Assembly (NCBI GenBank): GCA_965240325.2
Contig: OZ251232.1
Coordinates: forward strand, 1,116,001-1,180,000
DNA: 64,000 bases
Reading direction: 5' to 3'
Source: Rebecca billardiae RCC1528
Lineage: Eukaryota; Protista; Haptophyta
Shown here: in pieces, positions 1 to 54,453 of the stretch
Numbering within the stretch: the stretch's first letter is position 1
How the letters are laid out: every line of letters starts with the position of its first letter
The notes under the pieces: model-generated
Database searches by the model: none
What the model saw: the letters and a program-made list of their open reading frames with translations, nothing else
What the model was told of the DNA's origin: nothing
Made by a program: the position numbers and the translations under genes

Positions 1-1003
1 CTGGTTCCTTGAGGGTGTGCCGCTCGCTGCGCGCGCGCACGAGTGAGCTGGCGTAGTCCCAGTACTTGAGGGCCGGGTCGGGAAGCGGGGAGAAGAGCAC
101 TGATGGCACGCCCAGGGCGTCCGAGAAGATGAGGCCGTGCAGCGAGCTCGAGACGACGAGATCACATCCTGCGATGGCCCTCGCAACGTCGGCCGGATCC
201 TGGTCGTGCCCGATCATCGTGAAGTTAAGCGCGCCGGCGGCCGGCCCGAGAACCGCGTCCCGGCCGTGCACGATGGCGCACAGCCCGCCACCACCGCGCG
301 CCGTGATGTCGAAGAAGCTGGGGACGAGCACGCGGGCGAACAGCCCAGGATCTCCGAGTGCTGGGGTAGGGCCCCGGAGTGCTGGCTCCAGGGCAGCGAG
401 CGAGTACCTGCCGCGCACAGCTGCAACGGTGACGTTGCCCTCCTTGAGAATCCGAGCAGCGTGCGCTGCGAGCGGCATTCCTCTGATGCCGGCACCGGCC
501 ACGACATCTCGCGGGCTGACTGCATCTTCGAGGAGCGAGCCGACCAACAGCAGCTCGCCCGGCGTGCGGTGCTCGGCCTTGCCGAAGGGTGACTGCAATG
601 GCACGTGCGGCACTGCAGCGCGTGGTTTGCGCAGGATGGCAGCCCACAGGTCGAGGTTGAGATCGTCGCCGAAGTTTCGCCCGTGCCAATGGCTGGTGGG
701 CTTGCGTGTTGGCGGCGGGACCCAGTGCACCACGGGGGCCGGTGATGCACAGCCACCGGCAGGCAGCTTGTCATCGATCGCCTTGCGGAGCTCGAGCCGC
801 AAACTCGCGAGAGTTGCGGGACTCGGTCGAAAGCGGTGCACGTCCTCCTCAGCCATGGGAGCACATCGTACGGGCGAGTCGCCGCCGGTCTCAGCGCCGA
901 TGGTCTCGCTGCTCGTCGGCAATGCCAATGCGATGGCGAACCGCGCGGTGAGCAGCAGCAACGCTGAGAGAGTCATTCGTCCCCCAAACCACACCGAGCC
1001 CAT
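1..1003 (-). CDS. Polysaccharide pyruvyltransferase-like protein with signal/anchor; 3' part runs off the window
   Basis: Near-identical direct copy of 53451-54453. Minus strand reads (MGSVWFGGR)MTLSALLLLTARFAIALA...HGRNFGDDL...LGDPG...VVSSSLHGLIFSDALGVPS. ATG at 1003 or 976. Confidence 0.8.
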   Translation of the reverse strand, partial: MGSVWFGGRMTLSALLLLTARFAIALALPTSSETIGAETGGDSPVRCAPMAEEDVHRFRPSPATLASLRLELRKAIDDKLPAGGCASPAPVVHWVPPPTRKPTSHWHGRNFGDDLNLDLWAAILRKPRAAVPHVPLQSPFGKAEHRTPGELLLVGSLLEDAVSPRDVVAGAGIRGMPLAAHAARILKEGNVTVAAVRGRYSLAALEPALRGPTPALGDPGLFARVLVPSFFDITARGGGGLCAIVHGRDAVLGPAAGALNFTMIGHDQDPADVARAIAGCDLVVSSSLHGLIFSDALGVPSVLFSPLPDPALKYWDYASSLVRARSERHTLKEP

Positions 1004-1046
1004 CGTACAGGGCCCCTTTGGGGGGTTAGGCCCATCCCTGATTTAA

Positions 1047-1315
1047 GGGCCATTCTTCATTACCCCCCGAGATTGTGTTTGGATATCGCGAGGAGAAAAA
1101 ACTCTACAGTTTACTAAGAATAAGAGACGCACACAGCTCAGGCAGGCGAGATACAGTAGCGCCGCGCCCAAAATCGACGGACCATCGATCTCAATAGGAT
1201 CTCGACCGATTCGACGCAAGTTGGGACGTGAATACGGATTCGTAAACTCAACTTTCGCCGAACCCACGCCGCAGGCCCCTTGCCGAATCGCTCGCGGCGG
1301 GGTGAAGAACGGCCC
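1047..1315. mobile_element. ~270-bp MITE (Harbinger- or Kolobok-like ends)
   Basis: TIRs (A)GGGCCATTCTTCA and TGAAGAACGGCCC(T) match 13/14; flanks are TAA and TAT. Lies between two divergent genes and contains the 49-bp unit. Confidence 0.6.
1104..1152 (-). repeat. 49-bp dispersed unit ATCTCGCC...AAACTGTAG, copy 1
   Basis: Reverse complement of 31677-31725; TACAGT occurs at both edges (1105-1110 and 1152-1157). Confidence 0.9.
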
Positions 1316-1454
1316 TATTAAAACATAGTAAACTGTGCATCCTGCGCAGTGAGTGAGTAACTAGTATTAATCGCAGCCGTGTGTCGCCGGCCCGAAAACG
1401 GATGACGTCAGCCCCTGAGACTTTAGTCGAAGCCGCGGCGCGGTGAGCTTGGCG

Positions 1455-3470
1455 ATGGCGCCCACCGTGGCCGCCGCCGTGGCCGCCCTCGCGCTGCTCA
1501 TGGCGCGCGGCGCGGGCTGCGCGGTGCACGGCCGGATCGAGTGGCTCGACGTCGAGCGCGTGGTGCCACCCAACTCCTCGTGGTGGATCACCAACCCGTG
1601 CGTGGCGCCGTGCGCGAGCGCAGAGACGGGCGGCCGGCTGCCGGGCGTGGCGTGGCTGATGCTCAGCCTGGGCGACGGGCGGGCGTGCATGCGCGGCGGG
1701 AGGGGCGTGGTGAGCGGCACTGACTGCCGCCTTGCCCACCTCGACGGCGAGCGCTCCCTCGCCATCGAGTTCGTCCTCGACGCGCGCGAGCCGACGTGCG
1801 CGGAGGGCGGCGTGTGCCGCGCGCGGGCAGTGCGCACGATCGGCGAGGGGAGCGACCCCAAGGTGTTCTGCGTGGCGGGGCAGCCGGTGGTGACAGTGAC
1901 GACGAAGGCGGGCCTCCTGCTCGACGACTCCGCCGCGCAGCCCCTCATGGTCGCGCGCACGGGCCTGCGCCTCTCGCTGTGGGGCGCGCGCGGCGCCGCG
2001 CTCTCGGCGCGTCTGCGCGGGCTCGCTGGACTGCAGCTGCTGGCCACAGGGCTGCCGCAGCTGTCCGATGGGGCGGCGGGCAGCGCGCAGCGCGCGTTCG
2101 GGCCGCGCGCGGCCGTGAGGCTCATGCGGCGCATGTGCGATCCGCGCCGGCTGGGGCAGCGCCAGTTCAGCGCGTGCGCGCGCTTCCTGCAGATGGTGGC
2201 GCGCCTCCGGCTGGCCGAGCTGTGCGCGGCCGGCGACAACAACAAGCGCGCGCGGCGGCCGCTGCTGCGCGAGCGATGCCACGGCCTCTGCGCCGGCGAG
2301 CTACGCGAGGTGCGCGGCTGCGGCGTTGGGTACGCGCGCGTGCACGAGGCGTGCGACCTGCTCCCACCGCCACCGGACGACGACGCCGACGAGCGCCCTG
2401 CTGGTGCGGACGCCGACGCGTCACGCGCTCGGCTGCGCGCGCTCACGCGCTTCGGGCCAGTGCCGACTAGCGAGTCGTCGGACAAGAACTGGAGCCCGTT
2501 CACGAGCGCGCGCGGCGGTGGGCTGGGCATGGTGCACGCGTTCGGGCACGACGCGCTGCGCACGTGCGAGCTTCGGGCCCCCGCCCAGCGCCTCGTCGGC
2601 GCCATTCTGACGACGCATGGACGGCGGCAGCCGAGGCGCTCGTGCCTGGCGTGCGCGCACGAGCCCGCTCGGATGGCCTCCGACTCGAGCGCGCCCTTCC
2701 ACGCGTGGCTGCTCAACGCGTCGAAGGCGCGCACGGCGGCGTTCTACGGCGACCGCGCGCGCTTCCCGACGTGGCGGCTCGCGCCCGTCAGGAAGCTCAG
2801 AGCGGCGGTGCACCTCAACGGCGTGCGGCTGCTGCGGCTGCGCCCCGGCACCGCACCCACCGCCACAGCGCCGGCACCGCACGCGCGCGAGGAGGCGGAG
2901 GCCGCGGGCGAGGTGCTGCTCGGCGTGCTGCACACGCGGCTGCGTGGCACGCTCGAGGGTGCGCACCCCGATTGCAAGCACCAGCCTCGCGCGGGCTTCG
3001 TCGACTACGCCCACTACCTGTGGCTGGCGAGCGCGCACGAGCCGCTGCGCGTGCTCGGCGTGAGCGCGGCGCTGCCGCTGCGCACGCAGCCTGCGCACTC
3101 GCCATGGTTTGGCAACTGCCGCAAGCTGCTGAGCGCGCGCGGCGCCCGCGCATGCCGTGTGGAGCTGACCGCGCTGGACCGGGCGAACGGCGGCGTGACC
3201 GAGTGCGGCATGCGCGTCGCGTTCGTCGGCGGCATGATGCTACTGGGCGCACACGACACTGCTGATGAGCACGGCGCGCACGGCGGCGCGTGGGAGCTGC
3301 TCGTAAGCTACGGCGCGGGCGACGCCGAGGCGCGCACGCTGCGGCTGAGCGCGGCCGAGGTGGCCGTGCTCTTCGCCAACGGCGCGCCCGGCGCCGCCCT
3401 CGGCGCGGCAGTAGGCTCCGCGCGCGCGCTTGACGCCGACGGCTACTACCCGCTCCACGGCAGCGACTAG
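1455..3470 (+). CDS. Secreted five-bladed beta-propeller glyco-enzyme, beta-1,2-mannosyltransferase (Bmt/GT91)- or GH130-like
   Basis: Signal peptide MAPTVAAAVAALALLMA. Motifs in order: NP, GSDPKVF (EDPRLF-like), DKNWSPF (EKNWxPF), LLGVLH, YAHY, VAFVGGM, LLVSYGAGD. Single ORF. Confidence 0.6.
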   Translation: MAPTVAAAVAALALLMARGAGCAVHGRIEWLDVERVVPPNSSWWITNPCVAPCASAETGGRLPGVAWLMLSLGDGRACMRGGRGVVSGTDCRLAHLDGERSLAIEFVLDAREPTCAEGGVCRARAVRTIGEGSDPKVFCVAGQPVVTVTTKAGLLLDDSAAQPLMVARTGLRLSLWGARGAALSARLRGLAGLQLLATGLPQLSDGAAGSAQRAFGPRAAVRLMRRMCDPRRLGQRQFSACARFLQMVARLRLAELCAAGDNNKRARRPLLRERCHGLCAGELREVRGCGVGYARVHEACDLLPPPPDDDADERPAGADADASRARLRALTRFGPVPTSESSDKNWSPFTSARGGGLGMVHAFGHDALRTCELRAPAQRLVGAILTTHGRRQPRRSCLACAHEPARMASDSSAPFHAWLLNASKARTAAFYGDRARFPTWRLAPVRKLRAAVHLNGVRLLRLRPGTAPTATAPAPHAREEAEAAGEVLLGVLHTRLRGTLEGAHPDCKHQPRAGFVDYAHYLWLASAHEPLRVLGVSAALPLRTQPAHSPWFGNCRKLLSARGARACRVELTALDRANGGVTECGMRVAFVGGMMLLGAHDTADEHGAHGGAWELLVSYGAGDAEARTLRLSAAEVAVLFANGAPGAALGAAVGSARALDADGYYPLHGSD

Positions 3471-5003
3471 CGTAGCAGTAGCGAGCAGTGCCGGTCTGAG
3501 CCGGCAAGCCGCGCTGCTCCTGCTGACGTCACGTCACGTCTGGGTGACCCGGGGGAGCATATCGTCGTCGTCAGTCGGGTTAGGTACGACTATCGAATCA
3601 TCGTTATTACATGACTGCGCTGCATGTACCCGGTGTGATGACGTCAGTATACTCAGTTTGGCGGCCGGCGGATGACGGATCTGCGGGATTCAGACTCAGA
3701 GTCATCACTATGATATACTATCGTACCCCGACCCGCGTATGCCGACGAACTCTTAGCTGGGATTATTGGGGAATGGAGGCGGGTCGCGTGTGACCGGACT
3801 CTTTATACCACTCGCGACGAGCGCTCGGCGGCTCGCGGCTCTCTATCCGATCATCAAGCCCCGTGAATCAAGGAGTCTTCTTAAAGGACGACCAATAACG
3901 ACGGCGTATATTTATCTTCCTGTTTTGTATCTTACCCGCGGACGAGTGGTATTCATCAATGAGCCATCAGGGCATCAGGAGAATGAATCCACCGCTTCGT
4001 AAACCTGATCGTCACTCGTATTTCATCTTCATCCTGTTTTGTATATTCAACGACGTGGCAGCATCGGACAAGCGTCAGGCTCAGACCGCTCAGAGTGCAA
4101 CAGACACATAGAATGCGTCCGCGCCTTCCGTCCAGGTCAGACAGTATAGTATACAGTTTCGTACTACCCGAGGACAAATGGTAATTATCGATGGACGATG
4201 AGCAACCTGAGGAGAATGAATCCACCGGTCAGCCCCGCCGCTGCGCCTGCCGCCGCCGTCGCTTGCGCCCGCATGGCGCAGCGTCGGAAGTTCCGACGAG
4301 CTCGGGCGACCGGCCGCGACCCATCAGGCGTTAAAAAGCAGGTTTCCCTCCCTTTCATTCCTTTGTTTCCAGCGCCCAAGTTGACGCGCAGCGCCAACCC
4401 GAGGTGGCGGGCCGTAGGTCCGCCCCTTGTAGTGCCCGGGGAAAAGATAAGAAAAAGAAAAAGGTGAAAAGGAAAATCGCACGCAAAGAAAGAAAATCGC
4501 CTCGCTCACTACCGGGCGCCCTCGTGAGCAGCTCCCACTGGGGACGCTGCGCTGAAAATCTGTTCAGGCTGGCGCGGAGCGCGTGAGCGGCGCGCGCCGA
4601 ATCCAACGCCGGCGCGGACATCGCGCGAGGATTCCCTAGACGGGTTTTCGCCCGATTCGCGATTGCTGCCCTCGTCGTCTCGCGTGCAGGTCAAACGAGG
4701 GCTAAAGTCGACGCGTCTGGAGGTACGCTCGGCGCGTCGACACGATCGTGCGACCTGGGGCGATCCTCGCCATACTTGCACGTCGAGCGCTCGCATCGCT
4801 CATACCATCGAGCGCTGCGCGCGACAGCCACCTCGCGCGATCCACCGCCGTGCGTCGGGCTCGGTGCGGAAAGGCCCTCATCACGAGGTGCCTCGCGGGC
4901 GGGAAAGCGCCATCGCAGGCGACGCAAGATTTGGCGCGGCCTTCTGAACTCGATCGCCGGAATCCTCATCGCGAACCGGACTGTCGCTCGCCCGCGCGGT
5001 CCC

Positions 5004-6736
5004 CCACTAATTCTATGATTTAAAGACACAGGCACGAGGGCGCAGCTCTCCTGATTCGTCTGTAGTGGTACTGGTCGAAGCTTGCAAGTTGCAGCAGTTG
5101 CAGTGGTGTGAGCGCGTTGATGTTGGTCCCCATGGCGGATGTCGTTGTTGTCGTCGTCCGGACGTCGTCAGGCCCACCAGGAAGTGCATGGGTACGAAAA
5201 CAAAGGCGAGTGAGCATGTTGGCGTCGGCCAGCCACTGGGCGCAGGAATTTCGGGTGGGGATTTTCTTTTCCGAATATGTTGGTGATGCCGTCAGAGCAC
5301 CACCAACCTCTGCCGCTGGCGGCTGCGCTGACAGCGCGCTGGGCGGCGCTGGAGGGGCGAGATGGGCGCCGACTGCGCGCCCTCCTGCGGTAGTTGCGTG
5401 CCCGCGAAGGCGGTGCGCGTGGTTGAGCGCGGCTGAAGAGCAGCCATTTGCGTCGTTCCACCGCTCGCCGTTCGGAATCACTGCATCCGCCGCGCCTCAG
5501 GCCATCGCGTGCGCCGCACCAACAAGGAAGTTGTGTGCATTCCTCGGCTGACTGCACGCGTGCCGCGAGCAGCGGCGTCGGCGTCCGGCACTTGGTTGCA
5601 CTGGGCAATGTCCAGGTAGTTTATGCACGCGGCATCGCTCGTCACAGTACGCTGCCTGGCATACGCATCTGCACGGGTCACACAGCCGTCAAAAGGCATG
5701 ATCGAGCATCACGCAGCGGTTGGCATCGACCTACGGCGAGGGTCATGTGAGCATGCAAAGCACGGACATGCGCCCTTCTGGATAGTGATGTAGTGAGCAC
5801 ATTCCCGCGTGAAAGGAGCGCGCGCCATTCAGGCACCGGAAGCGGCGTCGGGGCTGGATGCTCACGTCTTAGGCAGGCTGATGCTGCCTTCCGGCTGCAC
5901 GGGTGCGTCTATCAAGGCTGACCGTGTGTGCACGATGCGCACCGTCAAGTTCGACACGAACGTCCAGACGTGAGCTACTGCTTGACAAGGTAGTATACAC
6001 ACATTCATGCACGCGCCGTGTCATCCGAGGAGGCACATACACGCAGGCAGGCCATCATGGGCCTCGTTCAGGTATATTCTGCATCAGCACGCATACATGC
6101 ACGTACTAGCTCGGGCCAAGATTGACGTCGGAGCACGAGTCAGGGAGTTCAATGCCGGGGCAGAGCTGGACAGCGGTCACGCGTGTGGCCACTCCGCGCG
6201 AGCGCACATGCTCCGCGTCACCGCATATCAGCATGGCGTGCGCTGCAACGTCATCGTCGGGCCAGAGCGCTTGTTCGACCAATCGGCTCGTATGAATGAT
6301 GCAATCAGCACACCTGAACGCAGCTGTTCGGACCCGCGCTCATGCGCGGCGGCGCAAGGTAGCGCAGTGCGCACAGCGTAGGTCTCGCCGCGCGGAAGCG
6401 CATGCTCCGTGTGTGTCTCGCCTCGCATGGCGCACGCGGGCGACGGGCTGGCCGTGTGGCGGTGTGCACAGACAAGAATGCTGGCCCGAGGCAAGTACAG
6501 CCGAATGCGATGCGCGGCGCGAAGCGGCGAATGGCACTTCAGCACGACTGCCCAGCCTAGCTCGCCGGCTCTGCGCTCGCGGGATCGTCCACACGCACGG
6601 GAGCGCGGCGCCGTCGCCCGCTCGCCCGAGACGCGCGCGTCCGCCGCGCAGCGCGCGGCTGAATAAATGCAAGGCGGAAATAAAAAGCGCGCCGATTTTC
6701 TGATTTCTCCGACCCTGGGTGCCGTGTCCCCAGTGG
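5004..6736. mobile_element. Nested insertion with CCACTGGG/CCCAGTGG ends (CACTA/EnSpm-like, non-autonomous)
   Basis: Absent from the sister derivative, whose empty site GGTCCC|TCAGCC lies at ~52259-52270. Inverted ends at 5233-5240 and 6729-6736; the left end is displaced by a LINE fragment. Confidence 0.55.
5009..5232 (-). mobile_element. 3' fragment of a dispersed retroposon-like repeat (family A)
   Basis: Shares ...GACGAATCAGGAGAGCTGCGCCCTCGTGCCTGTGTCTTTAAATCATAGAATTAGT with copies at ~37.0, 44.1/45.3 and 49.8 kb. CCACT is duplicated at 5004-5008 and 5233-5237. Confidence 0.7.
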
Positions 6737-7837
6737 TCAGCCGAAGCCCACGTCCGGCCTGCATGGCGTCGACGGTGACCAATGCGACGGAAGCGCAGCG
6801 CCAACGGCGTACGACGCGCAGCGGACGCACCTCCCGGGTCTGTCGCCGTGGCAGCAACCGCGCCTTCGCGAGTTGGCGACCCTCGCCGCAGCGCGACACG
6901 GACAAGCCCGTGATGCCATCCGCAGAGAGATGAATCGTCGAGCATGCAACATCGACGCGCCATCCTCGTCCATGGCGCAGGCGCTGCGGGACGAGGCGGA
7001 CGTCGTCACGCCGGTGACGGATGCGCTGCGATTCGTGTGCCTGCGTGAGGAGCTCGTGCCCACTCTCGATCGCGAGTGGCACACGCTGTCGCTGTGCGCG
7101 CGCGCGCGCACAACCAACAGCTCCTCGTGCCGCCAAACACGCGGGCGCCAGACCTGTCGAAGATGCGAAGAGCGACGACCGCGTGAACGTCAACGCGCTC
7201 GTGCTCAGCGTGGCGGCCGTGCACGATGTCAACGCGACCTGCGCCGAGCCCATCATGCCCGGAGCGGACATCGGCAAGCATCCTCGCGACGACCGCTCTC
7301 GGCTGGCGGCAGGAGGACATGCACACGATCTACTCTGGCGGCTTCGTCGGTGGCGAGGCGCTCCATTACGCCATCGCGGTGGAGATGCGGCACATACAGC
7401 GCGTACCCGCGCTCGCGCGGAGCAACGGGCTACCCGCCCCGCCCCGCGTGCTGCACATTATTCCCTCGTGGGTGTGGCCCTCGCTGATGCGCACGGACGC
7501 GTACCGCACCGCGTGGGAGAACTTCACAGGTGTCACTGGTCACCCACGGCCACGAGTGAATGCTGTGGAAAGACGCGAACCCGCAGAGGAAACATTGCGA
7601 CAGCACTGGCACGGCCCGCCGACCCCCCCCCCCCGCCCGCCAGGGCACAAACTACGATTGTAATAAGAATGCTTTTACCTTTCAATAACAGCTTTACAAA
7701 CCCGGCATAAATAAACTCGGCCCCCAGCCCGGGCTGTCGGACGCAAATTGCTGCGCACGTCGTCACCCGGACACCGACACGCACGTGCACGAATAAAAGG
7801 AATGACGACAGCTCGTCGGGAGTCGGGACGCACAACA

Positions 7838-9913: not shown

Positions 9914-9972
9914 TATCAGTACTCAATTATTAGTGTCGTCACTTAAATGAGTAGGGCTGCCAAAATCGGTCC

Positions 9973-10003
<31 letters not shown>

Positions 10004-10030
10004 CGTATAATAATTAAAATATATATATAT
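9973..10030. repeat. (TAA)n/(TA)n microsatellite, the Copia target site
   Basis: Read directly; (TA)n resumes at 31809. Confidence 0.9.
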
Positions 10031-10585: not shown

Positions 10586-10592
10586 CGCCCCC

Positions 10593-27110: not shown

Positions 27111-27111
27111 C

Positions 27112-44093: not shown

Positions 44094-45303
44094 AAAACAG
44101 CGGCATCCCCGGGCGCCTACTACCTCAGTGACCGTGTGATCAGCATCGGTTACGACGACTCCCTCACCGGTCACCCGCGGCCAACGCGCTCCGACATCCT
44201 CCATTAACTCCATTCAGTACTTCGACAGACGAATCAGGAGAGCTGCGCCCTCCCAGTCGTATCCCCAAACAAACCTTTTGCCTGGTTCTGAAACCTTTCC
44301 GGACCGCCAAACCGGCCGCACGATGGCGGATTCGGCATGGCGGTCCGGAAAGGCTCCAGAACCATGGCAAAAGGTTTGCCAAATCCAAACACGCCGCCTG
44401 GGGAGAGCGACGCCCTGGGGGTCAAGCCTACACGGAAAATCGAGAACACACGAGATGCCCATGTACTTGAGGTGACGTTGAGCGCCCGGTGTGCGAGCTC
44501 ACTGCTGCCGCGGGGCCGCCAGCCGACGCGCACGGTGCACCGGGTCGTGACCGAGTGATGAACAGGTCAAGGTGTAGCTTGAGAGGTGCAGTTTCAGACG
44601 CGTCGTGATCCACTCACGGTGGGCATCACGTCGGACCGTTGGCCGCCTGCGGCACCGGGACGCGGACGCAGGGGCGAAGGCCGTGGCGTGCGGAGCGGAG
44701 CACGTTGGCGAGCGCCGAGCGACACCGAACTTCAACTTTTACCGCGACGCGAGTCGGCCTTGTTGTGGCCACGCAGCTCGCACGGACAAACATAACTACA
44801 AGATTCGGGCGGGCGAAGCTACCCTCCAACCAATCAGAAAGCACATTCGACTGCAAGATTCGGGCGGGCGAAGCTACCCTCCAACCAATCAGAAAGCACA
44901 TTCGGTAGTCTGAACTGCAGGGAATTCTAGCCTAAATCGCGGCGCGATTCGTCGTCGCCGAAACACATGGCTGACCATTTGAGCGCACGAATGTTTCAGC
45001 GTACGAAGATACCTTGCAGTACGCTGAGATACCCCCGCGCCGTTCTAGATTCCCGAGGTTGTGGGAGATGCCTACTCACTATTCTAAGCCGTCTCATGTT
45101 TGATGCGATTGTATGCGGGAGAACGCGGGGTCGGCCGTGAAACTTTCAAAAACCAAGCACGGCAAGCGGGTACGGTGTGCGCCTCCGGACCTCAAGGGTG
45201 GGCTCGGGCGCTTTCAGCGCCCGAGCCTTTCCGCGTCCGAAACATTTAAGGATCCGAATTCAACGTCACACAACGTGCCTGTGTCTTTAAATCATAGAAT
45301 TGG
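44094..45303 (+). mobile_element. Family A fragment split by a ~1-kb insertion (44253-45273)
   Basis: 44094-44252 plus 45274-45303 rejoin to the reverse complement of 49732-49921. Confidence 0.7.
44795..44904. repeat. 55-bp tandem duplication containing GGGCGG and CCAAT motifs
   Basis: Units at 44795 and 44850. Confidence 0.85.
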
Positions 45304-45484
45304 TACTGCCAAATGATCGGGGCCGGGGTATCCGGCCAGCCTTCGGTGCGCATCCGGACACCAGCACTCGCCGGGGTGGGGACGACGCGGGGTCCAAAGC
45401 GTTGCGGCGCGGCAAAGGGCGGGTTCACAAGCCAGAGGGCACCGTGCCCGCAAGGCAGATTAGCACCGCTGCTTTGCCTCCGCG

Positions 45485-46651
45485 ATGGGAACGTGCCTGC
45501 TGGCGCTGCTGCTCCTCTGGTCTGCGCACGGGCTAGCCACTCCAAGAGAAGGGCTGCCGGCAATTCCGCTGGCCAAGATGACGGTCGACAGTATCGCGGG
45601 CCCGGCGGGCGTGGTGCCAAGCCAGTGCGCGCCCGGTGGCGTGTGGACAAAGGCAGGTGTGCAACGGGAGCTCGAGCGCGCGCTCGCGCTGATCGCATCC
45701 GCGCCTATCGAGCGCGAGCCGTTCGAGCACTTCAGCGTGCACGGGCTGTTCTCGGAGTGCTTTTATGCCGACCTGGTCCGCGAGGTGCCACCGAAGAGCC
45801 AGTTCACCGAGGCCTACTACCCCGGCACGCAGTCAAGGGTAGGCTGCTACCTGCTGCCGACCGAGCTGGGCAAGGCCCCTCCCATTGCGTCCGCGAGCCC
45901 AATCATTGTGCCACACCATTGCTGCATCCCGAAAAGCGGCCACTCGATGAAGAGCGAGTACTGCCTCCAGCATACGTGCCGCTCGCAAACGCTGCAGCTG
46001 CACACCAACAGGTCACGCGCCGGCTGGATGATCCCGCTGCCAGCGCTCGTTGCGCGGGCTCGGTCGATGCCGCTCTGGGCGCAGCTCTTCCGGCTGGTGC
46101 ACTCTGCTAATTTCACGCGCCTGCTCGTCGACAAGTTCATGCTGCCCGACGGTGGTGGCGTGCCTTGGTGGAAGCGAGAGCACCTGCTGAAGACTGGCGG
46201 CCTGCGCTCGCTCAAGAACTCAGCCGCTCTGCGCATCGAGCCAGAGTACTACCACCTCGCGCCGCACGTAGACAAGTGGGAGAAGATCGTCACGTGGCAG
46301 TTCTTCCATCCGCCCACAGACGCACTTGCCACCCGGCGCGCGGGCACGTTCTTCTACCGCCCGCTGCCAGAGCTGGCCAACAAGTTCGTGGTAGACGACC
46401 AGGCAAACCCATTGTGGCTCAACTACAGCTACTTCGAGGCCGTCAAGGAGCTCAGAGTGATGCGCAACACCTTCTTCGCGTTCGCACCGAACAGTCGGTC
46501 GTGGCATGGCGCATCGATCGATGGCGCTCAGCTGCGTGGAGCGCCTCCTGACTCGCGTCGCACGTTCCTGGGCTTTGTGACCCGGCAAGAGGACGGCTTC
46601 CGGCACTTCACGGAGAAAGACTGGAGCCAGGAAGAAGCCTTTTATGTCTGA
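45485..46651 (+). CDS. Secreted 2OG-Fe(II) oxygenase (prolyl-hydroxylase-like fold)
   Basis: Signal peptide MGTCLLALLLLWSAHGLA; EPFEHF N-terminal motif; HxD in APHVD; GTFFY; distal His in SWHG; 2OG-binding Arg in SRRTF. Confidence 0.8.
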   Translation: MGTCLLALLLLWSAHGLATPREGLPAIPLAKMTVDSIAGPAGVVPSQCAPGGVWTKAGVQRELERALALIASAPIEREPFEHFSVHGLFSECFYADLVREVPPKSQFTEAYYPGTQSRVGCYLLPTELGKAPPIASASPIIVPHHCCIPKSGHSMKSEYCLQHTCRSQTLQLHTNRSRAGWMIPLPALVARARSMPLWAQLFRLVHSANFTRLLVDKFMLPDGGGVPWWKREHLLKTGGLRSLKNSAALRIEPEYYHLAPHVDKWEKIVTWQFFHPPTDALATRRAGTFFYRPLPELANKFVVDDQANPLWLNYSYFEAVKELRVMRNTFFAFAPNSRSWHGASIDGAQLRGAPPDSRRTFLGFVTRQEDGFRHFTEKDWSQEEAFYV

Positions 46652-46957
46652 CGCCCATCATCCAGTGTGATGGCTGGGCCTGACAGCGGGTTGCTGCCAG
46701 CCGTGTCACTGGCAGCAGTCTGGCAGTCACGCAGGACTGGCCGCATTGTCCGTGGCGGCTCTGGCGCGAGTGTCGCTGGATGCTCGCGCCACGGCTGGAG
46801 CGCCAGCAGAAGCCGATGATGCGGCCCGGCCCGCGCCCGGCAATATATCTTGCCTTTGGCCGGAACATTGCGTTAATCTGAGGCCCTTTCTCTCGAACGC
46901 CAGGCAATCCTGAAACCAAAACTGTCTTAACTGAAACCAAGAAGTGGGTTTCGGCTT

Positions 46958-47024
46958 GTATCTCCACATATTAACGACGTGGTATGCAACGTATCTCCAC
47001 ATATTAACGACGTGGTATGCAACG
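46958..47024. repeat. 33-bp perfect tandem duplication
   Basis: GTATCTCCACATATTAACGACGTGGTATGCAAC twice; the core resembles 4043 and 39031. Confidence 0.9.
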
Positions 47025-49731
47025 GGCAGGCGTCAGAGTCAGCAAGCTGTAGCAGCAGATCGAGCAGCAGAGACAAACACCAGGATCAGCGCTCCTCGCC
47101 GTCGTCCCCCCCCCTCATAGTATAGGGGGATATGTGCCGAAACGGAGATTTTCTGCGCCGGAAAACGAACTACGAAGGGAAAAACGAGCCGGGCTTGGGA
47201 CCAGGGCTCCAGTTTTCGCTTATTCGTTTCCCGAATCCAAAAAATCTCCTGCCCAAGATCGACCGTTCGACCTGCCACCTCGCCGCCCGCGGTGCCGGGG
47301 CGCTCTCGCCGTGCGCTCCGGCGGTTGTCGGGTCGGACTGCGGTGGCGGCGCGGGGCTCGAGCCGTTGCAGAGTCGCTTTGCACTCCTCTCTGTGTTGCT
47401 CGCCTTCCTCCTCCTCGCCTTCTCTGCGCCTTGACGCAGCGCGCGCGCACGCGCCGCCGTGCACGCACGGCAGCGCAAGGGATTGCGCGCCGCGCGTGGC
47501 ACGCGACGGGTCCGACTCGGGGCTGGAGCCACAGCGGGGCACGCAAACGCACGCTACGTCGTCTCGAGCCTGTGGGCCTGAACATCAGCGCGCGCTATGC
47601 TGATGCACATTCCAAACTGTTCCGTGATCTGGCAGCATCACTCACCGCGGTGTGGCGTGCGCGAGAAGCTTGAACAACGAAACTTGAGTGCGCAGACGCG
47701 ATCGATGCGGAGGCTGTCATGTTTGTGAGGGCGTCTCTAGTGGTGCCCATAGAGTAGTTGCTGGGCAGCGCCGTGTACGTGGCTGGCATCGTGTCTTGCC
47801 CACATAATCATCCCGACGCATGGCGGGGTCTGGACTCTGGTCAGGCCGCGCCTGCGGTGACAAAAAGACCTGTGAGCCTTTAGCGCATGGCAAGCAGACC
47901 GACACGCACGCTCGAGGCGGCGTAGCGTGCGTTTGCGATGGCTTTGCGTGCCCCCGCAGTGGCTCCAGCCCCGAGTCGGACCCGTCGCGCGCCACGCGCG
48001 CGGCGCGCAATCCCTTGCGGTGCCACGCCGCCGCGGGCGGGCCCATCACACTTCGCAGCCGCCGGCGCGGCGCCGATTGTGTACAGGCGGATGCGACGAG
48101 GCGTGATCGACGCATGAGCGCGACTCCACGTGCACGCCAGGCCACGCGAAGCTGACAGCCAGGGAGCACGGTGCGGGGCCGCGGATTCGTTCGGGCCGCT
48201 GCTGCTGACTGACCGCTGTCCCGGGTCACCGCGCACCGGCAGCGCCAGGATAGTTAGATGATTTGCACTGGTCCGAGTAGGGTTCGACCAGCGCCTGCGC
48301 GACGGCCGACAGGCGGGCGCGAGGCGTGATCGACGCATGAGCGCAACTCTGTCGGGATATCCGGACTCGCCGGATACCCGTGTGGCACCGAGCGCGAGTA
48401 GCTGCTCGACCGCTGCTTAAGCGCGAGGTGAGTAATCACTACAAGCTGGTGATTACACCTTTCGTCAAGGATACGTTCATTCTTTCCACTCCAATAGTCG
48501 CTCATTGACTACTCCCGTATGCGATGCTCTACCCGCTTACCGGGGCGACGCAGATACATACGGAGATCGTGGCTTCCACACGCCACGTTGCCGGTGTAAA
48601 ACCGTTTTGGAGGCTGCCTCGGCGTTTAGCCGAGCCAGCCAGCCAGGCAGAGGCTCGGGGCTATCCATCCTCTGGTTGCCCCCCCAGTCAGGCCAGGGCC
48701 CATTGCCGTAGGCCGAAGCCACACGCCTTCGTTTCGAGAGCCCTAATGTCTCAGAAACTCTACGTGCACGCCAGGCCACGCGGAGCTGACAGCCAGAGGG
48801 AGCACGCAGTGCCGAGGTTCGAGGGCACCGCAGTCACGGATCGTTCGCGCACGCCGCGCGTGCACGGGCTGACACACCTCGATCAGGCTCGGCACGCGTT
48901 GCAGAGGCACAGCCAGCTCTGGGGACGGCACGCACCACAGTCGCCCGCGCAGCTCGTCCTCCTCGTAGAGTACCGTTCAGTTCCGAGGCGTAGCCCTCGC
49001 TCAGAGTCGACCGTCGACGATGGACTCGGATCGTCGGCGCTCCCCGGAAAGGCATGGCAAGGGCGGCGCGTGGTGAAGTCGAAGACTCAGAGATCGATCA
49101 GTCCGGCATCAGGCGCCGCTGCCCCCGAGCTTGCGAGAGCCCGAATACAGGGCGGCTGCCGCGGCGCGGCCGGGGCGCCCCGGGCGACGCGCGCGGCCGC
49201 GCGCAGGCATCGACACGGGGCGGCGGGTGCGCGCGGAGTGAGCGGGGGCACGAACGCGATGTCGACGGCAGTCGGGACCCGCCACAGCCGCGCGCTCCAG
49301 GCGCAACTCGCCGCGCGCACCTGCCCATCGCCGTCCTCACCCGTCTGTCGCTCGTGCGGCTCGCCCCGGCGGCTCTCGCGGAGAGTGCGCAGCAACCAAG
49401 GTTTGGCTTTGCTGGGCCAGCCGTCCGGCTCCAGACTCGTGTCAGATAGTATTGAGATACGCCGAAGTTGGCGCATCGGCTACTGACCCTTGCCCTGTTG
49501 GCCCCTGATTACAGACACGGCGCGATTGAATAGTAGTTGATTCAACTGATTCAAGGGACGTACAACATGGTATTGGTCACATCGCGGTTCGCGGCAATCT
49601 CTATCTAGATACGTCATCGCTCCTTGGACCTTGCTGCAATCTCATTGGCCGGAAAAAATCGCTTGTAACGGTTCGTTACGTTAGGGATCCTAAAGGGCGT
49701 GAAGTTTTTTGGACGGGCGTCACTCCACGCT

Positions 49732-49921
49732 TTACTAATTCTATGATTTTAAAAAGACACAGGCACGAGGGCGCAGCTCTCCTGATTCGTCTGTCGAAGT
49801 ACTGAATGGAGTTCAATGGAGGATGTCGGAGCGCGTTGGCCGCGGGTGAGGGAGTCGTCGTATCCGATGCTGAGCACACGGTCACTGAGGTAGTAGGCGC
49901 CCGGGGATGCCGCTGTTTTTG
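49732..49921 (-). mobile_element. Family A retroposon-like 3' fragment
   Basis: Intact counterpart of the split copy at 44094-45303. Confidence 0.7.
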
Positions 49922-50165
49922 CAGTCGTCGTCGGCCTTGGTCATCATGTAGTTGCCCGCGTCGTCGTCCGAGGCTAGTTCAAGTTTAATGCCGTAGTGCA
50001 GGTAGTGGATGTGGTCGCCCGGGCCGGTGTGCGCGGCCTAGTGGCCTTGCCGAGTTGAGGGAGTAGTCGCCCTTGCCGTTGAGGAAGTCGTCGTCCTTGC
50101 CGTTGAGGCCAGTCGTCACTATGAACTTGTAGTCGTGGGCGCGTCCATTTCTCGGTGGCTCCAGC

Positions 50166-51118
50166 CACAGTCAGGGACGTCCACTGACCCTATGGGGGGG
50201 GTGCATTTAGTCGAACCCCTGGGAGCCAGGAAGCGATGAGGGTACCAATCGAAAGATCTCCGGGGCGGCGGACGAAGTAACGTAGTCCTCATCGAAGTAA
50301 TCGACGTCTTCTCACGCCTCGACGTGTTCGAAGGCGTCGTCACGTCGAACACGGAGGACTCCATCGTGCTGAACTTTTTTTTTCAAGTTCCCGGACTCCA
50401 ACGGTGAGCTGCGGCCATGTCGGGTGTCGCAGCCGCGCCCGGCGCGCGGAGACGTCAGCTGGCCAAGCAGATAGAGGACCATCCGATGACGACGGGCTCG
50501 CTGACGCGCTCGCGTGGGTGGGACAATGCGCGCGCATCTCCCAACGAGCGCAGGTACACGGTGACCCTGGCTTGCCCTGGCCATACGGATTGCCGTTGCC
50601 CGAAGCACGTCATGGTTGCCGCCACTGGGAGTCGCCGCCGGGCGAGAAGCTGCGCGTCAACTCGAGCGAGCTGCGCGCTGTCGGCGTCGAGCTGCTCGCG
50701 CCCCGGGCCGCGCCGTCAGCTCGCGGAGGCGCGGGCGTGCGCACGAGCTCGCGCTTGGCTGACGGCTCAGCGAGTTCGCGAGCGCGCCGAGGTGCGGCGG
50801 CCGCGGCGGCGGTCAATGCGTCGCTCGATCCAGCACTACGCTACGTCTTGACTAGCGAGGGAGACGCCGAGATCAGGGCTTTGTGCGAGGCGTCGCATGG
50901 TCGTCGCGAGGCGGCGCACAGCTGACGCTGTCAATCGACGCCGCTGCACGGCTCCGGCCCTCAGGCTCAGCGCAGCATTTGCGGCAGTCTGCGCCGATGC
51001 AAATCTGGCGAGTTGGGCCCCTATTGAGGCGTATTTGGTCCTTCGATGGGCTGGGGGGAGCCCCCCCCAGACCCCCCCAAATGGTTAAATGCACCCCTGC
51101 TGGACGTCCCGGACAGTG
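50166..51118. mobile_element. Degenerate TIR element
   Basis: Inverted matches CACAGTCAGGGACGTCCA / TGGACGTCCCGGACAGTG and GGGGTGCATTTA / TAAATGCACCCC. No clear TSD. Confidence 0.4.
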
Positions 51119-51327
51119 ACCAGAGCCCGGTGATGCGTGTTAGAGAATAGAGAGGGTCTCAAAATTCGAATAGCTCGGTCTCCTCCAGCCATGAAAATCG
51201 TCCCCCGTCCCTTTTTTCTTGATCAAAGATCTTTTTGAAACGTGGTTAGGGCCCACGGAGCGGGCTCCACGCTGCGCGCTCCGCCCTGCACCGCGGGCCA
51301 TAATACTACCTATCGGTAAAATTTAAT

Positions 51328-52860
51328 AAAACTGTGCCCTGGCGGGCGGGGGGGGGGGGGGGGGCGGCGGGCCGTGCCAGTGCTGTCGCAATGTTTCCTC
51401 TGCGGGTTCGCGTCTTCATCCACATTCGCTCGTGGCCGTGGGTGACGGACAGTCCGAGGGCGAGGACCAGTGAGAGTGACACCTGAAGGCTGAAGTTCTC
51501 CCACGTGTACACGTCTGTACTCTGTGCGCATCAACGAGGCCCACACCCACGAGGGAATGTGCAGCACGCGGGGCGGGGAGGGAAGCCCGTTGCTCCGCGC
51601 GAGCGCGGGTACGCGCTGTATGTGCCGCATCTCGACCGCGATGGCGTAATCGAGCGCCTCGCCGCCGACGAAGCCGCCAGAGTAGATCATGTGCATGTCC
51701 TCCTGACGCCAGCCGAGAGCGGTCGTCGCGAGGATGCTTGCCGATGTCCGCTCCGGGCATGATGGGCTCGGCGCAGGTCGCGTTGACGTCGTACACGGCC
51801 GCCACGCTGAGCACGAGCGCGTTGACGTTCATGCGGTCGTCGCTCTTCGCATCTTCGACAGGTCTGGCGCTCGCGTGCTCGGCGGCACGAGGAGCTGTTG
51901 GTTGTGCGCGCGCGCGCGCACAGCGACAGCGTGTGCCACTCGCGATCGAGAGTGGGCACGAGCTGCTCATGCGGGCACACGAATCGCAGCGCATCCGTCA
52001 CCGGCGTGACGACTTCCGCCTCGTCCCGCAGCGCCTGCGCCATGGACGAGGATGGCGCGGCGATGTTTCATCTCTCTGCGGATGGCATCACGGGCTTGTC
52101 TGTGTCGCGCTGCGGCGAGGGTCGCCCATTCGCAAAGACGCGGCTGCTGCCTTGGCGACAGACCCGGGAGGTGCGTCCGCTGCGCGTCGTACGCCGTTGG
52201 CGCTGCGCTTCCGTCGCATTGGTCACCGTCGACGCCATGCAGGCCGGACGTGGGCTTCGGCTGAGGGACCGCGAGCGAGGACTGAGTCCGGTGCGCCAGA
52301 TTCCGGCGATCGAGTTCAGAAGGCCGCGCCAAATCTTGCGTCGCGTGCTGATGGCGCTTCCCGCCCGCGAGACACCTCGTGATGAGGGCCTTTCCGCACC
52401 GAGCCCGACACGCGGCGGTGGATCGCGCGGAGTGGCTGTCGTGCGCAGCGCGTGATGGTGTAGCCGGTGCGAGCGCTCGACGTGCAAGTCGGGCGAGGAT
52501 CGCCCCAGGTCGCACGATCGTGGCGACGCGCCGAGCGTACCTCCAGACGCGTTGACTTTGGCCCTCGTTCGACCTGCACGCGAGACGACGAGGACAGCAA
52601 TCGCGAATCGGGCGAAAACACCCTTCGGGAATCCCCGCGCGATGTCCGCGCCGGCGTTGGATTTGGCGCGCGCCACCCATGCGCTCCGCGCCATCCAGGA
52701 ACCCTTTTTCGGCCGAGCGTCCCCAGTGGGAGCTGCGAGGGCGCCCGGTAGTGAGCGAGGCGATTTTCTTTTCTTGGTGAGGCGATTTTATTTTTCCTTT
52801 TCTTTTCCTACTTATCTTTTTCCCGGGCACTACAAGGGGCGGACAGTCTACGGCCCGCCA
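51328..52860 (-). mobile_element. Non-autonomous Helitron2-type derivative (1.5 kb)
   Basis: Same 5' hairpin and 3' asymmetric inverted repeat as 17642-27033; collinear with 4405-7650 minus its insertion. Confidence 0.85.
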
Positions 52861-53109
52861 TAAATAATGCCTGCTATGTCGTATCATACTCACTGCCGCG
52901 ATGACGTCACATATGTTGTCGTCTGTCACTCAGTCAACTGGTCAGTAGTCGGTGCACGAAACGCAGATCGAAGCCGAGTCGCGCGCTGCTCAGCCTCAGT
53001 AACAGTCTGAGGCTCATAGTGGCTCACCGCTGCGAGTACTGGTAGCTCACGGCCAGTGTCAGTGAGCCACTGGCCACTGGGACGGTGCGGGTCGTCTGCG
53101 GGTGGCTCA

Positions 53110-54453
53110 TTAGTCATTAGCTGCCCCCGTGACTGTCAGCAGATGGCGGGCCCTGACGCGACCGGGCGCCGGACGGCGCCACCTGCGAGTGGGCCCGGGC
53201 AGCGAGTGCGGCCCGAGCAAGTGCATGTCCCACCAGCGCGCCTTCTCCTCGTGTGTCGCTGCAGTGTATTCACACAGACGCCTCAGCGGCAGCGCCTGCA
53301 CATAGCGCACTGCCAATGCCTTCAGCTGCATGAAGCTGACACGTGGCTTGATCGACCCCGCGCGGCACGCGCGCACCACCGCGTGCAGGTCGGGCTGCAT
53401 CCACGCGCCCCGATCCATGCCTACCAGCCGGTTGAGTCCCGGATCTTTACCTGGTTCCTCGAGGGTGTGCCGCTCGCTGCGCCCCGGCATGAGTGCGCTG
53501 GCATAGTCCCAGTACTTGACGGCCGGGTCGGGAAGTGGGGAGAAGAGCACTGATGGCACGCCCAGGGCGTCCGAGAAGATGAGGCCGTGAAGCGAGCTTG
53601 AGACGACGAGATCACAGCTCGCGATGGCCCTCGCAACGTCGGCTGGATCCTGGTCGTGCCCGATCATCGTGAAGTTAAGCGCGCCGGCGGCCGGCCCGAG
53701 AACCGCGTCCCGGCCGTGCACGATGGCGCACAGCCCGCCACCACCGCGCGCCGTGATGTCGAAGAAGCTGGGGACGAGCACGCGGGCGAACAGCCCAGGA
53801 TCGCCGAGTGCTGGGGTAGGGCCCCAGAGTGCTGGCTCCAGGGCAGCGAGCGAGTACCTGCCGCGCACAGCTGCAACGGTGACGTTGCCCTCCTTGAGAA
53901 TCCGAGCAGCGTGCGCTGCGAGCGGCATTCCTCTGATGCCGGCACCGGCCACGACATCTCGCGGGCTGACTGCCTCTCCGAGGAGCGAGCCGACCAACAG
54001 CAGCTCGCCCGGCGTGCGGTGCTCGGCCTTGCCGAAGGATGACTGCAATGGCACGTGCGGCACTGCAGCGCGTGGTTTGCGCAGGATGGCAGCCCACAGG
54101 TCGAGGTTGAGATCGTCGCCGAAGTTTCGCCCGTGCCAATGGCTGGTGGGCTTGCGTGTTGGCGGCGGGACCCAGTGCACCACCGGGGCCGGTGATGCAC
54201 AGCCACCGGCAGGCAGCTTGTCATCGATCGCCTTGCGGAGCTCGAGCCGCAAACTCGCGAGAGTTGCGGGACTCGGTCGAAAGCGGTGCACGTCCTCCTC
54301 AGCCATGGGAGCACATCGTACGGGCGAGTCGCCGCCGGTCTCAGCGCCGATGGTCTCGCTGCTCGTCGGCAATGCCAATGCGATGGCGAACCGCGCGGTG
54401 AGCAGCAGCAACGCTGAGAGAGTCATTCGTCCCCCAAACCACACCGAGCCCAT
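53110..54453 (-). CDS. Polysaccharide pyruvyltransferase-like protein
   Basis: Signal/anchor; GRNFGDDL, VGSLL, AVRG, LGDPG, CDLVVSSSLHGLIFSDALGVPS. ATG at 54453 or 54426. The 3' end is uncertain (possible splice near 53180). Confidence 0.8.
   Translation of the reverse strand: MGSVWFGGRMTLSALLLLTARFAIALALPTSSETIGAETGGDSPVRCAPMAEEDVHRFRPSPATLASLRLELRKAIDDKLPAGGCASPAPVVHWVPPPTRKPTSHWHGRNFGDDLNLDLWAAILRKPRAAVPHVPLQSSFGKAEHRTPGELLLVGSLLGEAVSPRDVVAGAGIRGMPLAAHAARILKEGNVTVAAVRGRYSLAALEPALWGPTPALGDPGLFARVLVPSFFDITARGGGGLCAIVHGRDAVLGPAAGALNFTMIGHDQDPADVARAIASCDLVVSSSLHGLIFSDALGVPSVLFSPLPDPAVKYWDYASALMPGRSERHTLEEPGKDPGLNRLVGMDRGAWMQPDLHAVVRACRAGSIKPRVSFMQLKALAVRYVQALPLRRLCEYTAATHEEKARWWDMHLLGPHSLPGPTRRWRRPAPGRVRARHLLTVTGAAND

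Follow-up and report, generated by a model that had tools for sequence, protein, structure and literature searches.

In S. pombe, the Golgi ketal-pyruvyltransferase Pvg1p places a negative charge on the galactose cap after a glycosyltransferase step (PMC6801904). The PvGal pathway of S. pombe is composed of Pvg1p together with Pvg2-5 and the PEP transporters Pet1/2. To our knowledge, the PvGal genes have not been described as a cluster. Bacterial capsule and EPS loci (colanic acid WcaK, xanthan GumL, B. fragilis WcfO and CsaB) bring together glycosyltransferases, a ketal-pyruvyltransferase and tailoring enzymes, as does the algal locus described here, and their operons also hold flippase, polymerase and precursor genes in a conserved order. 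The GH130 family, which includes the Leishmania MPT GDP-mannose-dependent beta-1,2-mannosyltransferases/phosphorylases, has, as far as we know, cytosolic or bacterial members. In plant and fungal metabolic gene clusters, unrelated enzyme families adjoin in dynamic transposon-rich regions, as they do here, although such clusters are recognised from co-expression and a known product, and the algal island is described here from its gene content.

Two proteins of the algal locus, PvT-1 and PvT-3, are, like Pvg1p, eukaryotic PS_pyruv_trans proteins with a signal-like N-terminus; unlike in the PvGal pathway, a PEP transporter was not found in the island. The match of the algal PvT to Pfam is restricted to the last ~70 profile positions, and its own profile did not reach the Pvg1p structure among PDB sequences; the family that it matches, PF04230, is present in 9 of 14 control bacteria. 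Unlike those of the bacterial loci, the algal genes are largely recent duplicates, lie as separate units and are not conserved in their linkage. The algal propeller is similar to GH130 proteins (Z 19-22 over ~270-300 residues) and, unlike them, carries helical inserts and a secretory N-terminus and has no Pfam membership.

Gene content of the region

The window, that is, the whole stretch of 64,000 nucleotides analysed, belongs to the very GC-rich genome of a haptophyte-like alga and to a transposon-filled stretch of ~85 kb on C15, whose genes all code for secretory sugar-modifying enzymes. It contains the following features:

1..1003, minus strand: PvT-1, polysaccharide pyruvyltransferase, 439 aa (PF04230)
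1455..3470, plus strand: GH130-like five-bladed beta-propeller, 671 aa (fold match)
7838..9079, plus strand: N-terminal half of a fusion, degenerate pyruvyltransferase paralogue (47% identity to PvT-3, E 8e-85)
9080..9913, plus strand: C-terminal half of the fusion, GT-A type, putatively GT34/DUF273-like glycosyltransferase domain with DxD (single-copy in the genome)
10031..17641, minus strand: young Copia-type LTR retrotransposon (RVT_2, E 7e-49)
18158..26293, minus strand: Helitron-like transposon ORF, 2711 aa (AAA_30/AAA_19 helicase, Ulp1 protease and DUF6570 matches)
27085..31365, plus strand: multi-copy mobile element ORF, 1426 aa (at least 10 genomic copies)
33532..34977, plus strand: divergent Sulfotransfer_2-like (ST-like) protein, 481 aa, with a signal-anchor-like N-terminus (through paralogues)
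39088..42372: repeat-bounded element with two 780-bp direct repeats (100% identical to each other in self-BLAST)
42992..54473: copy B of a segmental duplication (four colinear blocks, 94-98% nucleotide identity)
45485..46651, plus strand: secretory 2OG-Fe(II) oxygenase, 388 aa (fold and metal triad)
53110..54453, minus strand: PvT-3, polysaccharide pyruvyltransferase, 447 aa from the Met at 54453 (PF04230)
63938..64000, plus strand: start of a GT47 (exostosin-type) glycosyltransferase gene, beyond 1-54453 and continuing to C15:1181542

A sequence-only reading had described six single-ORF genes with N-terminal signals and no housekeeping gene between them, and this largely holds: all six uninterrupted ORFs are present, and each of the six products starts with a hydrophobic segment (Kyte-Doolittle 15-residue maxima 1.95-2.26). 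Between the enzyme genes, a codon-usage scan gave transposon ORFs only and no further gene, and a tRNA search found none. This space is filled by the Copia element, the Helitron-like ORF and the multi-copy element. The Copia element has LTRs 99.7% identical to each other (10031-10423 and 17249-17641), a polyprotein ORF at 10593-17249 and a 98.7% identical copy on C7. The copies of the multi-copy element (95-99% aa identity) lie in longer frames, and its 1426-aa ORF has no Pfam family. The repeat-bounded element at 39088..42372 lies outside the enzyme set.

Left of the window, the run continues into another 2OG copy and a TylF-like methyltransferase gene, and to the right into the GT47 gene (PF03016, E 1.5e-11, on positions 1-1542 of the right-hand flanking DNA), whose reading frame was traced back from this flank into the window. 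Past the methyltransferase and GT47, the first ordinary genes code for an MFS transporter and for a PPR protein. The former, which lies just past the right end of the run and is unspecific, is the sole transporter seen; within the run, genes for nucleotide-sugar, PEP or PAPS transporters were not identified. Between ~C15:1.101 and 1.182 Mb no unrelated genes were detected, so that several unrelated enzymes are contiguous in the sense used for gene clusters, transposons alone intervening. The enzyme genes are separate, transposon-interrupted units on both strands.

Pyruvyltransferases and the fusion protein

The start of PvT-1 is at window position 1003 and its last ~105 codons lie to the left of the window (C15:1115687-1116000). 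Both PvT-1 (47.7 bits, E 2.5e-12) and PvT-3 (46.5 bits, E 6e-12) exceed the PF04230 (PS_pyruv_trans) gathering cut-off of 25.3 bits, the aligned part being profile positions 211-277 only, in agreement with the two pyruvyltransferases read from the sequence. The proteins share 91% aa identity and contain a signal-like N-terminus and the C-terminal motif of the PS_pyruv_trans family. In the alignment, the His of the SSSLHG motif is found in PvT-1, PvT-3 and all motif-bearing paralogues except the fusion; from its motif position, it would correspond to the PEP-binding His (CsaB H308 / Pvg1p H339; PMC10435577). The PvT family comprises 15 loci in the genome.

The whole fusion ORF spans 7838-9913 on the plus strand. 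Its N-terminal half does not reach PF04230 (11.3 bits, E 0.32) and its motifs are degraded, NFGD being replaced by SFAH and the SSSLHG His by Arg. An H-to-R change inactivates CsaB (PMC10435577), and the pyruvyltransferase half of the fusion looks inactive. Pfam matches of the C-terminal half are weak, both for DUF273 (18.1 bits, E 0.002, cut-off 30) and for GT34 (PF05637, 10.7 bits, E 0.43); a genome scan with PF05637 recovered three other loci and missed it, and word searches gave no homologues. However, hhalign against the three GT34 proteins of the genome gave 90.5% probability (E 1.4e-6) over 67 columns, which take in LDAD (the DxD region), and GT34 identity is tentatively proposed. Of the pyruvyltransferase-GT34 fusion in the sequence-only reading, the junction of a PvT paralogue (47%) and a GT-A domain stands; the PF04230 profile fails for the first half, and the GT34 profile matches the second only weakly.

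Propeller, sulfotransferase-like and oxygenase proteins

The GH130-like gene is divergent from PvT-1, with start codons ~450 bp apart, and codes for a protein that begins with a signal-like segment and contains large helical inserts (~300 extra residues). It has no match to GH130 (PF04041) or any other Pfam family, and neither have 19 of 20 homologues scanned, the remaining one matching PC-Esterase only. Its AF2 model (pTM 0.81) is closest to GH130 phosphorylases (Z 21.8; rmsd 3.0-3.2 over 272-280 residues; 4udg, 5b0p), followed by Leishmania MPT mannosyltransferases (Z 19-20), with only Z 14-15 for GH43/GH62; Foldseek was weaker (E 2.5e-3). On this model, the GH130-like half of the proposed Bmt/GH130-like identity is confirmed at the fold level only. 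The Candida Bmt / GT91 family (PF12141) gave no Pfam match, its sole link being a language-model neighbour cluster with BMT in 17% of members. Giant-virus glycan enzymes with several domains also match the model, and one of these carries a WcaK-like pyruvyltransferase annotation. The family has 5 loci in the genome.

The ST-like protein, proposed as a Sulfotransfer_2-like enzyme, itself stays below the PF03567 cut-off (13.8 bits against 22), but aligned paralogues reach 30.0 and 22.6 bits, and its sulfotransferase identity is supported through these paralogues only. K153, G155, P195, R198 and S201 are invariant across 8 paralogues, and K153/G155 and P195/R198/S201 may represent the PAPS-binding sites (5'-PSB Lys, 3'-PB Arg/Ser). 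Most paralogues have an Arg before the Pro, but the window protein and the aligned 85% C8 copy have Ala there; another 85% copy is on C37. The genome contains at least 59 Sulfotransfer_2 matches and ~20 more loci of the ST-like subfamily.

The 2OG protein has no Pfam match. Its AF2 model (pLDDT 85) gave PasI, PolD, Tpa1 and PHD2 as top Foldseek matches (best E 3.5e-7), and the matches listed are nearly all 2OG oxygenases. H261, D263, H341 and R359 (HxD...H...R) are invariant across 22 sequences, and the modelled DSBH fold, the HxD...H triad and the 2OG-binding Arg confirm the predicted 2OG-Fe(II) oxygenase. A second copy (98% identity) is located at C15:1102515-1103678, and the 2OG-like family has 5 loci in the genome.

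Duplication and linkage

The partner of copy B, copy A, spans window positions -18616 to 1023, and each copy contains 2OG and PvT genes together with a repeat fragment; the 2OG+PvT pair is present twice through one colinear segmental duplication. Segmental duplication plus older paralogy accounts for the three PvT and two 2OG genes (one of the latter left of the window). Most enzyme genes also have 85-98% copies elsewhere in the genome. On C14, a GH130-like copy (95% identity; 96% at the nucleotide level) lies 42 kb from a PvT copy (88-90% nucleotide identity), and these copies are gene-sized, homology stopping within ~25-130 bp of the ORFs. These comparisons indicate that the six enzyme genes are not independent, about half being recent copies, and dN/dS values of 0.45-0.89 in all young pairs point to relaxed constraint on the young copies.

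The paralogous loci that were examined do not retain this linkage: the C14 region around the paralogues contains MFS transporters and RCC1, POP1, Aladin and EsV-1-7 genes, and the C3 GH130-like paralogue adjoins an Fpg/Nei DNA glycosylase. On homologue-bearing environmental contigs, which are short and include no close relative's genome, cluster partners were absent within 10 kb of GH130-like or 2OG homologues, one of the latter lying near a tRNA synthetase. Conserved linkage is thus not seen at any of these places, much of the richness is recent duplication, and the capsule-locus-like dedicated pathway that had been proposed is not supported.

Co-occurrence at the locus itself is improbable under uniform placement: with families chosen post hoc, the probability that a single 64-kb window holds all four is about 2.5e-5, and that it holds any three of them 0.018. 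This bears out a concentration of secretory-type glycan- and protein-modifying genes among transposons. The clustering claim holds for the locus and not beyond it, since outside it cross-family pairs within 50 kb are not significantly in excess (4 vs 1.64 expected, P=0.084). Two co-locations occur elsewhere: an ST-like and a PvT gene lie 10 kb apart on C7, and C14 has ST2 together with GH130-like and PvT genes.

Origin and possible function of the locus

We give about an even chance to the reading that ~C15:1.10-1.18 Mb is a duplication-prone, transposon-rich neighbourhood accumulating Golgi/ER glycan- and protein-tailoring genes. These would be gathered through segmental and gene-sized DNA duplication, and the region may be a birth-and-death nursery in which families of surface-glycan enzymes evolve fast, rather than a single co-adapted pathway. 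All of the products are probably luminal enzymes: the PvT products would be PEP-dependent ketal-pyruvyltransferases, the GH130-fold enzyme would more likely build than degrade a beta-linked hexoside, and the others would be a GT-A transferase, a PAPS-type sulfotransferase, a 2OG/Fe(II) hydroxylase and GT47. Against duplication, both the length and the purity of the run exceed what is expected by chance, and the meeting of five to seven different families is not explained by duplication alone.

Possible, if doubtful, is a co-functional cluster in which Golgi enzymes would act one after another to assemble and modify a single anionic glycan of the surface or the scales (addition of hexose by GH130-like, GT-A and GT47, ketal pyruvylation, sulfation and carrier-protein hydroxylation), held together through selection for co-inheritance or shared chromatin regulation. 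The four-family enrichment, the stretch free of detected unrelated genes and the two further co-locations argue for it, as do the PvT fused to a GT-A domain, the divergent pair ~450 bp apart and the giant-virus proteins that combine the propeller fold with glycan-synthesis domains. However, the families were picked post hoc, linkage is not conserved at the examined paralogous loci or in environmental relatives, half of the genes are recent duplicates with high dN/dS, the PvT half of the fusion lacks NFGD and the conserved His, and the three kinds of transporter were not identified in the run. The PvT/GT-A fusion, the short PvT-1/GH130-like interval, the giant-virus matches and the PC-esterase-bearing homologue fit functional coupling, which is suggested only for the divergent PvT-1/GH130-like pair and the fusion; co-function of island enzymes is plausible only for the divergent pair.

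A further reading, which we consider unlikely, is a PvT + GH130-fold two-enzyme module in a rapidly duplicating, strain-variable anionic-coat locus. If so, a beta-linked hexose cap would be added and then pyruvylated on haptophyte scale or surface glycans, by PvT and propeller enzymes whose genes lie side by side in divergent orientation here and may be fused in a giant-virus protein. The island would then diversify a pyruvylated, sulfated coat under virus or grazer pressure, as a eukaryotic counterpart of bacterial capsule loci.

Rather improbable is chance aggregation, by which, glycan-enzyme families being numerous, gene-poor transposon-rich windows sometimes hold only these, one such window having been singled out among >1,000. 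The size of the sulfotransferase families, the ~5-7 founder genes left after collapsing duplicates and the lack of significant linkage outside the locus fit this explanation, but the PvT, GH130-like and 2OG-like families are small, the placement probabilities are low, and no glycan enzyme was among the ~15 ordinary neighbours examined at other places, so the background fraction of such enzymes is not high. That the locus is what remains of a glycan gene block from an integrated giant virus (NCLDV) is hardly credible, because, although the genes are intronless and the nearest language-model clusters and viral fold matches (propeller, 2OG) include Nucleocytoviricota, no viral hallmark genes were found, genes of this genome are normally long single ORFs, GC3 (~85%) and codon usage are like those of host genes elsewhere, and homologues occur on Copia-bearing eukaryote-like contigs and in MMETSP transcriptomes.

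Gene content and extent of the island

The Rebecca billardiae genome comprises 72 Mb in 41 contigs, and the window has a GC content of ~65% overall, with a GC3 of 85% in its genes. A codon-usage log-odds scan, whose training set consisted of the candidate genes and their paralogues, returned six host-like ORFs within the window, together with transposon ORFs. The six candidate genes were modelled without splicing. For one window protein, the nearest language-model cluster consists mostly of Haptophyta.

Host-like ORFs of the window
1-1003, minus strand: PvT-1, pyruvyltransferase, continuing past the left window edge
1455-3470, plus strand: GH130-like protein, 671 aa
7838-9913, plus strand: fusion of a pyruvyltransferase (PvT) half and a glycosyltransferase (GT) half, 691 aa
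33532-34977, plus strand: Sulfotransfer_2-like (ST-like) protein, 481 aa
45485-46651, plus strand: 2OG-Fe(II) oxygenase (2OG), 388 aa
53110-54453, minus strand: PvT-3, pyruvyltransferase

The sequence-only reading had described six uninterrupted secretory-type genes with nothing housekeeping among them, and this is borne out: a hydrophobic N-terminal stretch is present in all six, the codon scan gives only transposon ORFs in the gaps, and the tRNA search of the window was negative. Long uninterrupted ORFs are normal in this genome (an ordinary 80-kb region of contig C14 is packed with them), so that a single-ORF structure is no special trait of the candidate genes. The ORFs at 48524-49486 (plus strand) and 51967-52929 (minus strand, inside a repeat) were not accepted as genes, given their Arg/Ala/Ser/Pro-rich composition and codon scores below the threshold, and are regarded as compositional artefacts. 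The glycan-enzyme island is larger than the range first proposed for it, with the following features on its two sides.

Features flanking the originally proposed range
C15:1102515-1103678, left of the window: second 2OG copy, 98% identical
Adjoining the second 2OG copy: TylF-like methyltransferase (E 5e-4)
Further left: 497-aa ORF with no assignable family
From window position 63938, at the right end: GT47 gene
Beyond GT47: MFS transporter and PPR/methyltransferase gene, the first ordinary genes

Segmental and gene-sized duplication

Self-comparison showed that -18616..1023 (negative coordinates lie left of the window start) is colinear with 42992..54473, in four blocks of 94-98% nucleotide identity that contain the 2OG gene, a repeat fragment and the pyruvyltransferase gene. 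Because this colinear duplication made 2OG and PvT twice, the candidate genes are not independent. Other copies are gene-sized, with homology limits ~25-130 bp from the ORFs: the GH130-like gene (window 1418-3599) has a copy of 96% nucleotide identity at C14:691868-694054, and the pyruvyltransferase gene (window -248..979) has one of 88-90% at C14:734385-735606, 42 kb from the former. No poly-A was found at these C14 duplicates, and the GH130-like gene was duplicated together with a short motif upstream of it that includes TGACGTCA; a retrocopy origin was therefore rejected in favour of DNA duplication. Copies of the ST-like gene (85%) are located on contigs C8 and C37. Among young copies, dN/dS ranges from 0.45 to 0.89, which indicates relaxed or diversifying evolution. 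The best explanation of the locus, to which we give about an even chance, would be a duplication-prone neighbourhood of glycan-enzyme genes. At present, the locus mainly illustrates how duplications, both segmental and gene-sized, give rise to look-alike "clusters" where DNA is rich in transposons.

Enzyme families

Exact-protein look-ups of the window's own proteins gave no matches, and neither did PDB sequence searches for any candidate family, with single proteins or with profiles (the ST-like profile found nothing, and that of the pyruvyltransferases did not match Pvg1p). Pfam at permissive thresholds gave no decision for 2OG, the GT half of the fusion or the GH130-like protein, the last lacking any match. 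A word-based homologue search with the GH130-like protein was also empty, and a profile built from five genomic paralogues retrieved 28 relatives among 1.8 billion representatives; 19 of the 20 relatives scanned contain no Pfam family. One member of the family, P0040 (883 aa), has a PC-esterase domain (Pmr5/Cas1p-type) at its C-terminus, which points to glycan modification as the context of the family. The AlphaFold model of the GH130-like protein (pTM 0.81) matches GH130 mannoside phosphorylases and Leishmania MPT mannosyltransferases with Z values of 19-22, those for other five-bladed propellers being clearly lower (14-15); Foldseek alone was weak. The earlier assignment as a Bmt/GH130-like propeller stands for GH130 at the level of the fold, whereas membership of Bmt is unsupported. 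In the environmental contigs L034-L039, from an uncultured eukaryote (GC ~58%), distant GH130-like homologues (586-607 aa) always form a conserved pair with a divergent 397-404-aa neighbour, ~20-100 bp away. This neighbour, which has no detectable family, was rejected as a conserved cluster partner, as it shows no similarity to the pyruvyltransferases, the ST-like family or the neighbour of the GH130-like paralogue on contig C3.

PvT-1 and PvT-3 are above the PS_pyruv_trans cut-off, with a match limited to the final ~70 profile positions. The N-terminal half of the fusion is a pyruvyltransferase paralogue (47% identity) that falls below Pfam recognition. In an alignment of 10 genomic paralogues it is the only one in which the NFGD motif is missing and, among those carrying the SSSLHG motif, the only one in which its His is replaced by Arg. 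In CsaB, the PEP-binding residue His308 (His339 in Pvg1p) is essential, and the H308R variant is inactive (PMC10435577). Because the same change inactivates CsaB, the pyruvyltransferase half of the fusion (7838-9079) is probably catalytically dead, provided that the His of SSSLHG corresponds, as we infer, to CsaB His308. The C-terminal half is single copy in the genome, has weak Pfam matches (DUF273, E 0.002; GT34, E 0.43) and gave nothing in a word-based homologue search. Profile comparison with the genome's own three GT34 proteins gave a probability of 90.5% for 67 columns around DxD, and this half is tentatively assigned as a GT-A, GT34-like domain that has kept its DxD. Pattern scans found no pyruvyltransferase relatives in metagenome contigs and no GH130-like relatives on viral contigs. 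No papers naming haptophytes together with pyruvyltransferases were found.

For the 388-aa 2OG protein, environmental and transcriptome data yielded 21 homologues, and Pfam assigns a family to none of them. Residues H261, D263, H341 and R359 are invariant in 22 sequences, and nearly all structures matched by the model (pLDDT 85) are 2OG/Fe(II) oxygenases. The locus thus adds two secretory enzyme families that lack annotation: a propeller of GH130 fold that carries helical inserts, and a clade of 2OG oxygenases. Both occur in environmental and transcriptome sequences. The ST-like protein is below the Sulfotransfer_2 cut-off, which the paralogues aligning with it pass, and motif-like residues are invariant in 8 paralogues. 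In the putative 3'-PB motif (RxPxxRxxS), the first Arg, present in most paralogues, is Ala in the ST-like protein and in the aligned 85% copy on C8, and the C37 copy has an internal stop (TGA). This young subclade may be losing its activity.

Clustering and linkage

A true co-functional glycan cluster is possible, although rather unlikely. PvT-1 and the adjacent GH130-like gene are transcribed divergently, ~450 bp apart, and a viral structure library matched the propeller model to large multi-domain giant-virus proteins, with a domain make-up (known by annotation only) of LicD/FKTN, fucosyltransferase and, once, a WcaK-like pyruvyltransferase. Together with the PvT-GT-A fusion, these are hints of coupling, which speak for a biosynthetic propeller and a possible partnership with a pyruvyltransferase; the Satyrvirus protein A0A3G5AG18 is a candidate for carrying both domains. 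Protein P0049, tested as a fusion of both, was negative. If the island or the PvT/GH130-like pair were co-functional, it would provide a genetic handle on the charged scale and exopolymer glycans of haptophytes, which are relevant to carbon export and virus attachment; eukaryotic surface-glycan gene clusters are, to our knowledge, rare.

Against co-function, about half of the gene set is a recent duplication, and the conserved linkage expected of a cluster is not seen at the loci examined. Outside the locus, linkage among the four families is not significant: 4 cross-family pairs lie no more than 50 kb apart, with 1.64 expected (P=0.084). The C14 region with GH130-like and PvT copies also contains MFS transporters and RCC1/F-box, POP1, Aladin and EsV-1-7-repeat genes, and the C3 GH130-like paralogue adjoins an Fpg/Nei DNA glycosylase gene. 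No partner families were found within 10 kb of GH130-like or 2OG homologues on environmental contigs, the longest of 31 kb (one contig has a tRNA synthetase gene), this being a weak test, with distant relatives (24-45% identity) and short contigs.

Chance aggregation is improbable. With 15 PvT, 5 GH130-like, 5 2OG-like and ~65 (collapsed) sulfotransferase loci genome-wide, random placement would bring all four families into one 64-kb window with P ~2.5e-5 and any three with P=0.018, values to be read knowing that the families were picked after the window was seen, among >1,000 windows scanned. The objection that these families are hugely expanded fails for three of the four. The co-occurrence noted in the sequence-only reading is real and statistically unusual; its interpretation as a pathway has no conserved-linkage support. 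That the locus is a viral remnant is very improbable.

Transposons and repeats

Mobile and repeat-bounded elements of the window
Between host genes: young Copia element, LTRs 99.7% identical
Between host genes: Helitron-like ORF, 2711 aa
27085-31365: multi-copy element ORF, 1426 aa
39088-42372: repeat-bounded element, ~3.3 kb, flanked by two identical 780-bp direct repeats, with a tandem duplication inside

The 1426-aa ORF is regarded as a young mobile element because it has at least 10 copies genome-wide at 95-99% amino acid identity, some of them embedded in frames as long as 3371 aa. Pfam assigns it to no family, and RNase H-like and OTU-protease-like motifs were judged by eye. The 3' end of this element (31169-31724) is 100% identical over 556 bp to C14:733803-734358, just upstream of the C14 pyruvyltransferase copy, which suggests that the same mobile element adjoins both PvT loci.

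Directly upstream of PvT-3 there are tandem palindromic repeats (54651-54895, periods of 41, 72 and 113 bp), at which the homology with the PvT-1 copy stops, ~20 bp ahead of the ATG. A satellite at 57241-58792 (seven copies of a 221-bp unit, 93% identity, surrounding GC 76-78%) is probably non-coding, because its period is no multiple of three. At 60894-62829 (plus strand), a Pro-rich repeat tract (SPPPP/STPPP-like), with frames shifting along it, may represent an extensin-like gene that is broken or mis-assembled, or a mere CCG-rich microsatellite; if extensin-like, it would be a conceivable substrate for the nearby 2OG hydroxylase and glycosyltransferases.
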